A stretch of 64,000 nucleotides of DNA. Origin: Dimorphilus gyrociliatus. Lineage: Eukaryota > Animalia > Annelida. Each line of letters starts with the position of its first letter. The stretch's first letter is position 1. Below are positions 14,701 to 19,956 of this stretch, piece by piece. A model generated the notes under the pieces. The model searched no databases. It was given only the letters and a program-made list of their open reading frames with translations, and was not told where the DNA came from. The position numbers were made by a program, and so were the translations under genes. The stretch spans positions 600,942-664,941 of the forward strand of contig CAJFCJ010000009.1 in assembly GCA_904063045.1 (NCBI GenBank), written 5' to 3'.

Positions 14701-16363
14701 TCTATTGTACCTCAGTCGTATAAAAAAAAATACTGCTATAATTATATCGCATATGACGGACTGCAAAGCGTTTGTTTGGTAGGTAAACGCAATTATTCAA
14801 CGCTTTCGAATCAATCGAATATTTACCGAGTCGAAACAATCGGCTAGTTAATTCTTTTTAACGGTCTTGTTTAAAATCAATAGAAATCTGACAAACCTTT
14901 TCGCGTTTGTTAACGTCGGCACCCAGTTCCATCAGCCTCTCTGCTATTACAATTTTGTTCTCCTTAACTGCCATCATTAAGGCAGTTGAATTAGATACCT
15001 GAGGGAAAAACACAACTGTTTATGAGATCATAATAAAAGAGTAAAATGAGAGAAATTGATTGATTTTCTATCAGTTTCATTTTATTTAGTCGGTTTGCAA
15101 ATTGTTTACCGGATCTTGAGCATCAATATCCTGTAGCGGATTCTGGGCTACTGTTCGAAGATATTGGTCTAATTCACTCCAAGCTCCTTTCATTGCGAGT
15201 TCAAGCACCATTGGTAGCTTTTCCTCTTGTTTTTCCTCGCTTTCCTTCTTTTCAGCCGTTTTAATTTCATTCTGCTTTTCATCCTTTTCCTTTGATTTCT
15301 TCTCATCTTTTGGTTTTTTTTCATCTTTTTTCTTCTTATCATCCTTCTTTTCAGGCAATTTTGGTGTCGAAGCTGATCTTGTGTTAGAAGGAGGAGGTGT
15401 TGCTCTCTGTTTCTGTTCCTCAATTAGTTTTTTAGCTGGTCTAGGAGATGATTTTTGCAGCTCTTTATTTTCTTCCTTAGGAGATTCCTTTAAATTTGCA
15501 GGAGGTATAGAACCATTTGATCGTTTCTCGATAGTATTACTCTTAGTTTGTTCAACTTTCTGTTCTTGTTTCTGACTAGTTTGCTGTTGTGGTGTTTTTT
15601 CCGATTCAACTTTTTTCGTTTTATCAGGTTTGTCAGTTTTTTCAGTTTTATCACTTTTATCACTTTTATCACTTTTATCAGTTTTGTCAGTTTTTTCTTG
15701 TTTTTCTTGTTTTTCAGCCTTTTCAACCTTTTCAGCCTTTTCAGCCTTTTCAGCCTTTTCAGCCTTTTCAGCCTTTTCCGCTTTCTCTGTCTTTTCCTTG
15801 TTTTCTGTTTTATCCGTCTTAGGTTCACTTATTGTTTCGTTAGTGTTTTTAGGCTCGGATTCAGTTTTATTTTTTGACTCTGTTGCATTAGGATCGTCAT
15901 TATGAGGTTTATCCTTTGGTGGGATGGATGGAGTTTTGGTACCGTCTTTTTTAGCATCGTTTTTCGCTGGTTCAGAGTTGAGTTTTCTACTTGTTTCTAC
16001 CTTTTTCTTGACAGTAGGTGTAGTGTCTACTTTTTCGGACTTATTTTGAGAAGTTGACGGTTGAACTTTACTTTTATCGCCTTCTTCTTTCTTCCTTTCA
16101 GCTTTATCCACATTATCCACTTCTCCTTTGTTTTTTGAGTCATCTTCAACTTTTTTTGGCGCATTAGCCTTTGCTTCATTACTTCCTTCTACTTTAACGT
16201 CTTTTGCCTTATCAGTTTCACTCTTAGCCTTAATAGCGGACTTCACCGGTCTCTTTGGCGATTCATTCTTTGGTTTTGTTGTAGCTGAGGGATTTCGTCT
16301 CTCACGACTCGAGGATCTACCACGGGCCGCACTTGCCAACCTCGCTCTAGCGCTGCTCATCAT
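8763..16363 (-). CDS. nompC: TRPN/NOMPC mechanosensitive channel, about 2003 aa. Exons 16363-15110, 14998-14897, 14571-14473, 14355-14242, 14181-13978, 13915-13310, 13248-13021, 12892-12764, 12710-12594, 12521-12423, 12361-12161, 12071-11973, 11920-11819, 11647-11543, 11457-11356, 11272-11189, 11129-8763
   Basis: Long ankyrin array followed by TRPN-specific segments (KEKERAKDL, FLDVLIECEQKEV, LDFLSFHHLFGPWAIII, VLINLLIAMMSDTYQRIQAQSDTEWKFGRAKL). All 16 introns are GT-AG and phase 0. Confidence 0.95.
15625..15790 (-). repeat. Coding 9-bp-period tandem repeat encoding (A/V/Q/T/S/P)-(E/D)-K tripeptides in the TRPN N-terminus
   Basis: Plus strand reads (ttttcagcc)n, (tttttcttg)n and (acttttatc)n; translation EKAEKAEKAEKAEKAEKVEKAEKQEKQEKTDKTDKSDKSDKSDKTEKTDKPDK. 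Confidence 0.9.
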
Positions 16364-17221: not shown

Positions 17222-17712
17222 TTCTATTTTATTTTTACTTTTGATTGAACAGTTCTCTCTCTCTCTTTCTTTCTTCCGTTCTTTCTTCTTTATTCTAGTT
17301 TAAAGTAGGCAAGTAAAAGGGAAATTACTTGATACAGATTTTTCGCTGTTTCATTATTTCGACAAGTACTATTTATAATAGAATTTTTCGTGTAGTATAT
17401 ATTAACTTAAACTTACGTCGCTTACAGCTCCGATTAAATTCCTCCCAAGAAGCTAATTGACAGATGATATTCAATTACTTGTATTATATGAGATTGCAAA
17501 CACATAGCATTGATTATTTCATGTACAAAAGAAAAAATTCTCCTTTTCTATCTGTCTATATTACCGTCGGTCTATCTGTTATTCATTTATAAAGGGTTAA
17601 GAGGAAGTATATATATTTAATTATACCATATATATATATATATATAGTATATTATATATTAATAAATTAGTCCTATGGTCACATTTAAAGTTTAAAAAAG
17701 AATTATTTAAAA

Positions 17713-19956
17713 ATGGAAAGAATTTATACAATGTGGCTAGTTCTGATATCTATATTTGTCAATTATTCATACACCACACAATTTTGCTGCTTTCAGGCGA
17801 CCAATTCAAGCTTTATCGATAAGTCAAATATATGTTTTTCGTGTGAAAGAAACGTTAACGCATCAGAAAGCAAAGAAGTTTGCAGACGGAAAGACATGGC
17901 TAGATTTGAATTTCTCAATTATTTACCAGAATATATTCCTTTATCTGATTATTCTCATTTAAAAGTACTAGAGGAAAATACTAAAATCAGTTTGGGATTT
18001 AAAAATAGTACTAGTCTCCTATCGACTAGTGTTTTTTGGGTTGGATTGAATGCTATTTTGAGGGAAAATAGAACAATTTTTCAAATGGACTCGTCCACAT
18101 GGAAAAATTCTGTTAGCTTGGAATTTAAAGATCAGCAATTCAATTCTGAAAAGTGCCTCGTTATCGATATACAAACCGAAGTATTAAGTAATTATAACTG
18201 TTCTGAAAAAGTAGATGTTTTATGTTATAGGCCTCAATATGGATTCTGGGGCAAGTGGGAAATGATCAACCTTTGTTCTGAAGAAGGGTACCGTCCAAAC
18301 GAATTGACTTCGGAAGAATATAGTAACGAATAGACAAACTTAAGATTAAATAAGACTAATAAGTTTTCCTTGTTGAATGATCTGTCTGCTTTTTGTAGAC
18401 AATCCGTTTGACGGTATTCTTGGAGGATAGTACTTAAGAAAAGAAGCTGCGATAGTCCGCCCAGTTGTCACTATCATAATCATTGTGGGGGTCCAGCAAG
18501 AACGGAAGTTATCCGAGAAATGTGTAGTGTGGTCGAACAACCGTCTAATGTTTTTATTGCAAAGAAGGAGACGTCAGTGACTGTAAAGAATCTAGCTACC
18601 AGTTATAACGAATGTAAACAAAGAAACAAGCTCGATACTTCCTTTACTATCAAACAAGAAATTAATGGCTTATCATTGAATTTTACATTTGAAGGTGAGG
18701 ATGATAGCCAAATTTGTCCTGACAGGGAGAGATTTTATCTCTCAACTAAGAATGCCGTTTCGTTGGATGATTGCATGAAAAAATGCGCCGAATTCACTCT
18801 ATGCATTCGCTTCTCTTTCTTCCAATACTATCTGGAATGTAAGTTAAAAGCATCAAGACGATGTTGGAGAAATGAACCATGTGCCTTTAATTATATAAAA
18901 CGGCCTAATTTTTGTTTTGATTTAATAAAGGAAGGCGTAAAAGAAATTACGTCGGAAGTCTATTTCGATAATGAAGGAGGCTATTGCTATACTCACCTAC
19001 ATAGAATGAACTTTCAAAGCGCAAAGATGGCGTGTCGGTCGATCGGAATGCATGTTCTAAAGCTTTGGATTCAACAAGATGTTGATACTGGAAATTCGTT
19101 TTTTGTAAGATTAAGAAAATTAAAATTTCGTAACGTTTGGTTAGGTTTACATAGAGCATCTTCAGCCGATACATTCATTTGGCAAAGCGACCTCTGGAAA
19201 GATTTCGACGCCATACCGTCTACGCACAGCAAAATAGTTGAAACAGGCTTGGGAGAGGGTGCGTGTTTTACTGCCTCACTTGATAGCGACTCAACTATTG
19301 ACTGGGTTAATAGAGATTGTTTCAAAAATGTGGCTCATGTTATATGTTTTAGGCCTATTATGGGAGAATGGGGTCCCTGGGTTGCTTGGAGACCTTGCTC
19401 TACTTGTAAAGAAAGGCGTATGGAGAGGCATAGAGATTGTAATATGCCAGAACCTATAATTGGATCGTGTTTAGGCGAGAAATTCGATTACAAGAGTATA
19501 AATGTAGAATCTGAACCGTTGCCGCCTTATTATTATCATATATATGTTGGTTGCATTTGTGGCACATTAGTTCTCTTATTTGCATATGTACTAAAGAAGA
19601 TTCAGTCTTCGTTCTATGGCCGATTCGTAGAGCAACTTCATAACTATGAGAGGGAAGCAGAGAGGGACTATTTCACATTGAAGAATCGTTTAGCAGATTA
19701 TGTGAGTGACGTTTGCGAGACCTCACCCATTCGTACTTCGAAAAGTGTAAAACGTCAAAAAAGCTACACATACACGTACATTACTGAAACAGATTCAGAC
19801 CCATTAAAAGAATTTAATCAAGCGGAAGAAGACGGAAATAGTGATAAAATCATGATCGAAAAATTGGAAGAGGCGGAAGAGGAAGAAGACGATGAGAAAT
19901 TAGATTATAAAAATATTACAGTTGCAGTTGATATAGAAAATCACGATGAGAGATAG
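17713..19956 (+). CDS. Single-pass receptor: signal peptide, C-type lectin, TSP1, PAN/apple, C-type lectin, TSP1, TM helix, acidic Tyr-containing tail. ORF interrupted at 18289-18416 by a small inserted element
   Basis: Two same-frame ORFs (17713-18333 and 18520-19956). CTL motifs FWVGLN and VWLGLH with C-terminal C..C pairs; TSP1 starts WGKW and WGPWVAWRPC; PAN-like SLDDCMKKCAEFTLCIRFSF; TM segment IYVGCICGTLVLLFAYVL. The frame is restored either by deleting the insert or by a 138-nt intron (18288-18425). Confidence 0.75.
18291..18414. mobile_element. 124-bp MITE-like element with imperfect terminal inverted repeats and TA target-site duplication (Tc1/mariner-pogo style)
   Basis: Left end TA|CCGTCCAAACGAATTGAC; right end (reverse complement) TA|CCGTC-AAACGGATTGTC, i.e. 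about 19 bp with one gap and two mismatches. Deleting the element plus one TA gives the uninterrupted reading GAA GAA GGG TAT TCT TGG AGG ATA GTA. Confidence 0.65.

Follow-up and report, generated by a model that had tools for sequence, protein, structure and literature searches.

A probable shared intron with inverted-repeat ends in a lectin-PAN-TSP1 receptor gene of Dimorphilus gyrociliatus

The 64-kb window of Dimorphilus gyrociliatus DNA analysed here (the whole stretch under study; searches of the species' own genome used the 78-Mb, 349-contig assembly) carries on its forward strand a receptor-like gene whose coding sequence is broken within its first TSP1 domain by a short stretch with inverted-repeat ends. 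Upstream of the break, exon 1 encodes a signal-peptide-like N-terminus, C-type lectin domain 1, and the first (Trp) half of TSP1 #1. Downstream, exon 2 runs through the second (basic) half of TSP1 #1, a PAN-like domain, C-type lectin domain 2, TSP1 #2, a transmembrane helix, and an acidic tail before the stop codon. By domain search, the Lectin_C match in exon 1 is weak, as is that in the corresponding protein of a related species (P0004, below). From comparison with this relative, the stretch is very probably an intron that both species share. The features of the locus are as follows:

17713..18287, forward strand: coding part of exon 1 (open reading frame (ORF); ends in …WGKWEMINLCSEE plus GG)
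18288..18425, forward strand: putative intron of 138 nt, phase 2, GT…AG, containing the 124-bp element and, 3' of it, a further 9 nt
18289..18309, forward strand: left arm of the inverted repeat, TA at 18289-90 included, overlapping the 5' splice site
18331..18333, forward strand: TAG closing the exon-1 read-through frame
18354..18360, forward strand: GACTAAT, a putative branch point by its sequence, 65 nt before the AG at 18425 and 38 nt before the AG at 18398
18383..18401, forward strand: local hairpin around the strong out-of-frame acceptor (AG 18397-98), from folding prediction only
18397..18416, forward strand: right arm of the inverted repeat, TA at 18415-16 included, from sequence alignment of the arms
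18409..18411, forward strand: TGA in the exon-2 frame, after which the downstream frame is open to 19956
18426..19956, forward strand: coding part of exon 2 (ORF; TSP_1 and PAN_3 matches weak)
19528-19602, forward strand: transmembrane helix, within exon 2

In the NCBI nr annotation, the locus is represented by a 145-aa protein (17896-18333), which ends in read-through of the intron, and a separate 478-aa protein (18520-19956), which begins at an internal ATG. The domain pieces of exons 1 and 2 make sense only together, which argues for an interruption that is removed from the RNA, and a single receptor gene appears to have been split into these two models. The correction, one receptor gene in place of two listed proteins, is simple.

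The initial annotation had described the break as a TA, 124 bp, and a second TA with an imperfect inverted repeat at 18289-18416, and these coordinates were confirmed: the TAs lie at 18289-90 and 18415-16, the 124 bp at 18291-18414, and the left arm, TACCGTCCAAACGAATTGACT, and the right arm in reverse complement agree at 18 of 21 positions once a single 1-nt gap is placed. The other motifs it had listed are also present, namely the GT at 18288-89, GACTAAT, a tttttgtag ending at 18398, an AG at 18424-25, and in-frame stops. One of these stops, TAG 18331-33, closes the upstream ORF that begins with ATG 17713, giving 206 aa. The acceptor at 18398 is strong but out of frame and leads to a premature stop, as had been proposed; because of the TGA at 18409-11, which lies in the exon-2 frame, no acceptor 5' of it, that at 18398 included, can give the full-length protein. 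Removal of the 126 bp from TA to TA joins CSEEG-YSWR-IVLKK in frame (192 + 513 = 705 codons), which the initial annotation had taken as a restored ancestral coding sequence. The arithmetic holds in Dimorphilus; however, it is weak evidence, because only a length that is a multiple of three and four stop-free codons are needed, and in the relative the same removal would shift the frame.

Judged by sequence, the only GT-AG pair that is both in frame and compatible with the relative is GG/GT at 18287/18288 with AG/G at 18425/18426. Its use would produce the join CSEEG/IVLKK in Dimorphilus and CKEEG/FVLKK in the relative, and the resulting product would lack YSWR, an outcome already foreseen for the AG at 18424-25 and one that is now the best reading. 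Since the length of this intron is a multiple of three, the removal from TA to TA is in frame as well. Two alternative in-frame GT-AG pairs, 18293-18430 and 18323-18430, have no counterpart in the relative and were rejected.

The relative is represented by two proteins, P0002, found by a word search with the downstream ORF, and P0004, found by a full HMMER search with the upstream ORF. The former (511 aa, from Logan assemblies, and the sole foreign protein in the word search) is 66–67% identical to exon 2, while the latter (186 aa) is 60–61% identical to exon 1 over 181 aligned residues, and the two share the same four contigs, the longest being 20.7 kb. Neither is encoded in the Dimorphilus genome, where the best match to P0002 is the studied locus at 67%, and they therefore come from another species. 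Their ends bracket the same codon as the interruption in Dimorphilus, so that, as judged from the proteins, its position and phase are shared.

On the upstream side, P0004 ends in …NLCKEEGYRQN followed by a stop, compared with …NLCSEEGYRPNE… in Dimorphilus (where the exon-1 read-through ends in …NLCSEEGYRPNELTSEEYSNE and a stop). The left arm read in the exon-1 frame gives YRPNE, against YRQN and a stop in the relative, whose frame likewise leaves the exon into the same left arm. On the downstream side, P0002 starts with MCFDGTL-RFVLKKRSC, and the Dimorphilus right arm gives a matching PFDGIL one frame over, in a frame that is not that of exon 2. The Dimorphilus residues ahead of RIVLKKRSC in the exon frame, a stop and then RYSW, show no match to the relative (YSW against GTL). 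Across the window, the fraction of positions that match FDGTL or GYRQN equally well is about 3e-5, and the few other such matches include the reverse complement of the left arm itself (LDGTL), which again shows the repeat.

The stretch from the right arm to RIVLKK is thus conserved as DNA and not as protein, with an indel of 2 nt (9 nt in Dimorphilus, 7 nt in the relative), and the Arg codon bearing the AG at 18424-25 is conserved. The mismatch of YSW and GTL, the indel, and this conserved Arg codon together place the acceptor at 18425/18426. The best reading of the sequence comparison is that YSWR is a coincidence and not conserved protein, and the proposal that the ancestral coding sequence held it was not borne out. 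Back-translation of the relative's two ends permits a perfect 13-nt repeat, GTACCGTCAAAAC, while just inside the right arm the intron sequence is not conserved (AATCCG in Dimorphilus, ATGTGY in the relative); given this divergence beside conserved arms, the arms look constrained. By these comparisons, the interruption and both of its arms would predate the split of the two species. We also considered precise excision of a TA-bounded segment from the DNA, of the ciliate internal eliminated sequence type, and rejected it, as the frame is restored in Dimorphilus but would be lost in the relative through the 2-nt indel.

These results bear directly on the proposal that a miniature inverted-repeat transposable element (MITE) recently entered a 705-aa single-exon gene, leaving a null allele or an intron gain in progress. 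Such an event would leave a terminal inverted repeat, TA flanks, and an in-frame 'restoration', all of which are seen. However, the same interruption and arms are found in a species only 60–67% identical at the protein level, YSW is not conserved, excision would frameshift the relative, no other copies occur in the genome, and both halves of the gene bear the marks of purifying selection described next; we regard a recent insertion as extremely improbable.

Identity between the two species varies from 0.26 to 0.93 per 40 columns, Cys and Trp residues are conserved at 31 of 34 and 13 of 14 positions, respectively, and, the shared interruption aside, both halves of the gene are open throughout in the two species. 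By these sequence measures, both gene halves are under purifying selection and the gene is functional. The conserved Cys and Trp residues, the uneven identity, and the open frames rule out the null allele that had been suggested, as does the sharing of the interruption by the relative. Three paralogues (L006, L010, and L012) are single ORFs of 629–838 aa that pass through the matching TSP1 uninterrupted, and parsimony therefore favours a gain of the intron in the orthologue lineage; on this comparison, the intron is probably a lineage-specific gain. The suggestion of transposon-derived intron gain in progress hence stands in part: the intron is new relative to the three single-exon paralogues and its anatomy is MITE-like, but the gain is not in progress, as the relative shares the interruption. 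With a single intron here and none in the paralogues, the gene offers a clean test case. The account as a whole, namely that a fairly old spliceosomal intron at 18288-18425, shared by both species, lies within one receptor gene, is in our view likely.

The lectin-PAN-TSP1 receptor family to which the gene belongs comprises at least 10 loci (L006, L010/L011, L012, and others), several of which are single long ORFs of 629–838 aa, and sequence searches found no close relatives of the family outside this lineage. A lectin-TSP1-like fragment with four in-frame stops (L013, G000:C6:5424260-5424568) is probably a dead paralogue.

Several points weigh against this account. The splice sites are poor, with a donor of GTACCG and an acceptor that lacks a pyrimidine tract and carries G at −3. 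The intron, of 138 nt, is also about double the length of the clear introns of the window (54–62 nt, a handful found by the strict version of the ORF-pair analysis). Both of the NCBI proteins are unspliced ORFs, and a joined product of ~700 aa is absent for either species from the protein collection, although the length window of the search (282–898 aa) would admit one. The DNA of the relative is a back-translation from protein, which fixes neither the third codon positions nor its precise GT and AG, and a metagenome scan for that DNA found nothing. Finally, folding places both splice sites within or beside a stable predicted helix (see below), which could inhibit rather than help splicing.

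Much of this would be expected if the interruption were never removed and the locus comprised two genes or products, a secreted lectin of 145–206 aa and a separate 478-aa protein: the NCBI proteins are exactly these two, no joined product is in the collection, and the weak splice sites are paired in the predicted fold. However, the 478-aa product would lack a signal peptide despite Cys-rich extracellular domains ahead of its transmembrane helix, and its start codon is not conserved, the first ATG in the relative being intronic and that in Dimorphilus lying 35 codons 3' of the proposed acceptor. The region between the interruption and this ATG is conserved as protein (RFVLKKRSC…), and the TSP1 domain would be halved, one product keeping the Trp layer and the other the Lys/Arg layer. 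Two separate products are therefore very improbable, if less so than a recent insertion.

Given a shared intron, we turned to the origin of its inverted repeat. When the same geometry was slid along the whole window, the gapped inverted-repeat score of 12.5 stood 5.7 sd above the background (mean 5.1, sd 1.3), and of the 9,123 placements, four reached it: one of these is this very repeat at an offset of 1 nt, and poly-A/T runs account for the remaining three. Chance does not explain the inverted repeat. The initial annotation had itself named an alternative, an ordinary old intron with a chance inverted repeat, to be recognised by a single-copy element and an orthologous intron lacking the GYSWR residues; this is essentially what was found as to copy number and the interrupted orthologue, which has no YSW, but the repeat is conserved and not due to chance.

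With terminal inverted repeats, a TA on both sides, and an AT-rich interior, the 124-bp stretch has a MITE-like anatomy, and a MITE would not be out of place here. The D. gyrociliatus genome is reported to carry Mariner and MULE DNA transposons as well as MITEs with Mariner-type ends (Martín-Durán et al. 2020, PMC7854359), which makes a TA-flanked MITE plausible in this species. Like those Tc1/mariner-type MITEs, the stretch is small, has terminal inverted repeats, and is flanked by TA; unlike them, its arm sequence is not repeated and matches no multi-copy Mariner or MITE end in the assembly.

The proposal of a mobile family was not upheld by genome-wide searching. A BLAST search of the own genome with the whole element (128 bp) at E-values up to 10 matched its own locus only. 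Likewise, for the 13-nt core of the arms (exact) and the right arm (22 nt, at most three mismatches), only self-matches were obtained in the own genome, where reversed-pattern controls gave 2–3 matches. Across all arm patterns searched in the own genome (an 18-mer with at most one mismatch, the exact 13-mer core, and 22-mers with at most three mismatches), counts did not exceed those of the reversed controls, with one exception. This exception is a match to the left arm on the minus strand at G000:C7:1330612-1330633 (L003 1497-1518), where 21 of 22 bases are identical and the similarity begins exactly at the TA, fading over ~45 nt (34 of 45 aligned columns identical). The right arm is absent within 1.5 kb of this locus, the surroundings of which are AT-rich, non-coding, and without ORFs. 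With the chance of a match of this length estimated at ~1e-3, it hints, in our view, at a decayed element related to this one, and not at a family. Two further matches look like chance, that in L004 upon inspection of the locus and that on C3 as judged only against the control count.

Against a transposon origin, no multi-copy family, autonomous partner, or empty site was found in these searches; as for the last, the sole relative found is interrupted at the same site, and the uninterrupted paralogues are only ~25–30% identical. In addition, TA is palindromic and the predicted pairing continues past it into exon 1, so that the 'target-site duplication' may simply belong to the repeat. Weighing these points, a transposon origin of the intron falls just short of an even prospect.

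The nearest published parallels are introners and other MITE-derived spliceosomal introns, known from Micromonas, Aureococcus, Symbiodinium, and others (Gozashti et al. 2022, PMC9860276; reviewed in PMC11282704). As in those systems, a short non-autonomous inverted-repeat element with flanking duplicated bases would lie in an exon and be removed as an intron, with a splice site drawn partly from the flank. The described cases include some in which adjoining exonic sequence was co-opted, with the loss or gain of a few codons (PMC9860276, PMC11282704). Introners, however, form families of many similar introns, whereas here there is one copy and one 22-nt fragment, and the intron is old and shared by two species; membership of an introner family was rejected, given the single copy and the lack of near-identical introns in unrelated genes. 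No annelid case of an introner or MITE-derived intron turned up in this introner literature (PMC9860276, PMC11282704).

A different view of the same intron is that its repeat is an RNA helix that arose and was kept for splicing control, with the TAs merely part of the palindrome and no transposon involved. Folding predicts a helix of 18284-18301 with 18405-18421, in which the pair probability is at least 0.9 at all pairs but one (0.51, 18295-18410), and, from the Dimorphilus sequence only, an outward extension of 18273-79 with 18424-30; the fold has a z of −2.3 against shuffles. Position 18417 is T (U) in Dimorphilus and C in the relative, both opposite G, and this exchange of G·U for G-C suggests that pairing has been kept at the RNA level. 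The exchange, the extension of the pairing past the TA into exon 1, the conservation of the arms beside adjacent intron sequence that is not conserved, and the lack of a repeat family all agree with a helix of this kind. Speaking against it are the 18/21 terminal repeat, TA flanks, and AT-rich core, which together are classic MITE anatomy, the C7 locus, which shares the left-terminal 22 nt (21/22) from the TA on with a chance of ~1e-3, and the Mariner-type MITEs of the genome (PMC7854359). We consider a helix without transposon ancestry a substantial contender, if somewhat less than an even one.

A local hairpin is also predicted around the strong out-of-frame acceptor, with pair probabilities of 0.96–0.99 for six of its seven pairs and 0.71 for the outermost, and with the AG at 18397-98 having an unpaired probability of 0.0. 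The corresponding values are 0.01 for the 5' splice site and 0.05 for the AG at 18424-25. In this model, a bridging helix that pairs the right sites while a hairpin hides the decoy would fit known cases, and it could equally restrain splicing. In structure-bridged introns, such as zebrafish (AC)m-(GT)n introns (Lin et al. 2016, PMC4691745) and those of yeast in which the 5' splice site pairs with the branch point, the ends are complementary and a predicted helix unites the splice sites, as here, and the acceptor may likewise be without a pyrimidine tract (PMC4691745). In contrast to those introns, the arms here are unique complex sequence, the helix covers the 5' splice site, and it is predicted only. 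Inverted repeats at the ends, flanks resembling target-site duplications, and RNA-paired ends are further shared with the MITE-derived non-canonical introns of Fritillaria borealis and the nonconventional introns of euglenids (summarised in PMC11282704). Those are non-GT-AG introns, however, and in euglenids non-lariat, whereas here GT-AG suits both species, and the relative's sequence is incompatible with excision at the boundaries of the repeat. That the predicted helix is functional is a tentative suggestion, which we would sooner doubt than assert.

A helix that occludes the splice sites could also make intron retention the regulated default, with most transcripts yielding soluble lectin and the receptor made only when the helix is opened. 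A retained transcript that has no downstream intron need not be a target of nonsense-mediated decay, and none lies downstream here. The low unpaired probabilities (0.01 at the 5' splice site and 0.05 at the AG), the annotation models that read through the intron, and the stop soon after exon 1 in both species are in keeping with such regulation. The read-through tail differs in length between the species (4 aa against 14 aa), however, and the outer part of the helix, over the AG, is incompatible with the relative's sequence, so that in this model regulated retention seems unlikely. Were the helix to restrain splicing, the locus would act as a simple switch, with a soluble lectin and a membrane receptor as its two outputs. 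The initial annotation had likewise named a switch to a lectin-only form among its possibilities.

Returning to the shared intron, which we favour, its history may be pictured as follows. The intron would have been gained in the common ancestor of the two species, possibly by insertion of a small TA-targeting inverted-repeat element at the site (the just-under-even prospect given above), the GT being completed by the G ahead of the TA, and an AG of the exon, 9 nt downstream, taken over as the acceptor. Splicing would then join CSEEG to IVLKKRSC in one secreted-then-anchored receptor gene. The arms may have been kept since because a helix in the pre-mRNA brings two weak splice sites together, while the local hairpin hides the strong out-of-frame acceptor; alternatively, the helix may restrain splicing and so allow a soluble lectin-only product to be made as well. 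In its most specific form, this would be a fossil of transposon-driven intron gain in an annelid, in which a single TA-targeting element became an intron in the ancestor of two dinophilids and its repeats were exapted as an RNA bridge for weak splice sites, and such exaptation would account for arms that outlasted the rest of the element and its family. This combined version we hold to be rather unlikely, though less so than regulated retention. If both the transposon origin and the bridging were true, this would be a rare transposon-born animal intron kept across species, its repeats reused as a splicing helix. As this is one locus, the general significance is modest.

Two other classes of intron were considered. 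U12-type introns have the 5' splice site consensus RTATCCTT and a branch site of TCCTTAAC 10–20 nt before the acceptor. The donor here is GTACCGTC, and TCCTTGTT lies ~25 nt before the AG at 18398 and ~52 nt before the AG at 18425, and a U12-type intron was rejected. A host intron for a small nucleolar RNA or mirtron was likewise rejected, as the best Rfam matches score 11–17 bits against gathering scores of 39–211 and the helix encloses an interior of ~100 nt.

Elsewhere in the neighbourhood, a (TA)n microsatellite occupies 17627-17660, ~60 bp 5' of the receptor start codon, likely in the promoter or 5' untranslated region. Head to head with the receptor gene, a 425-aa ORF lies on the minus strand at 15086-16363 of the window; its product is very rich in Lys, Glu, and Ser, with runs of KAEKAEK and KSDKSDK.

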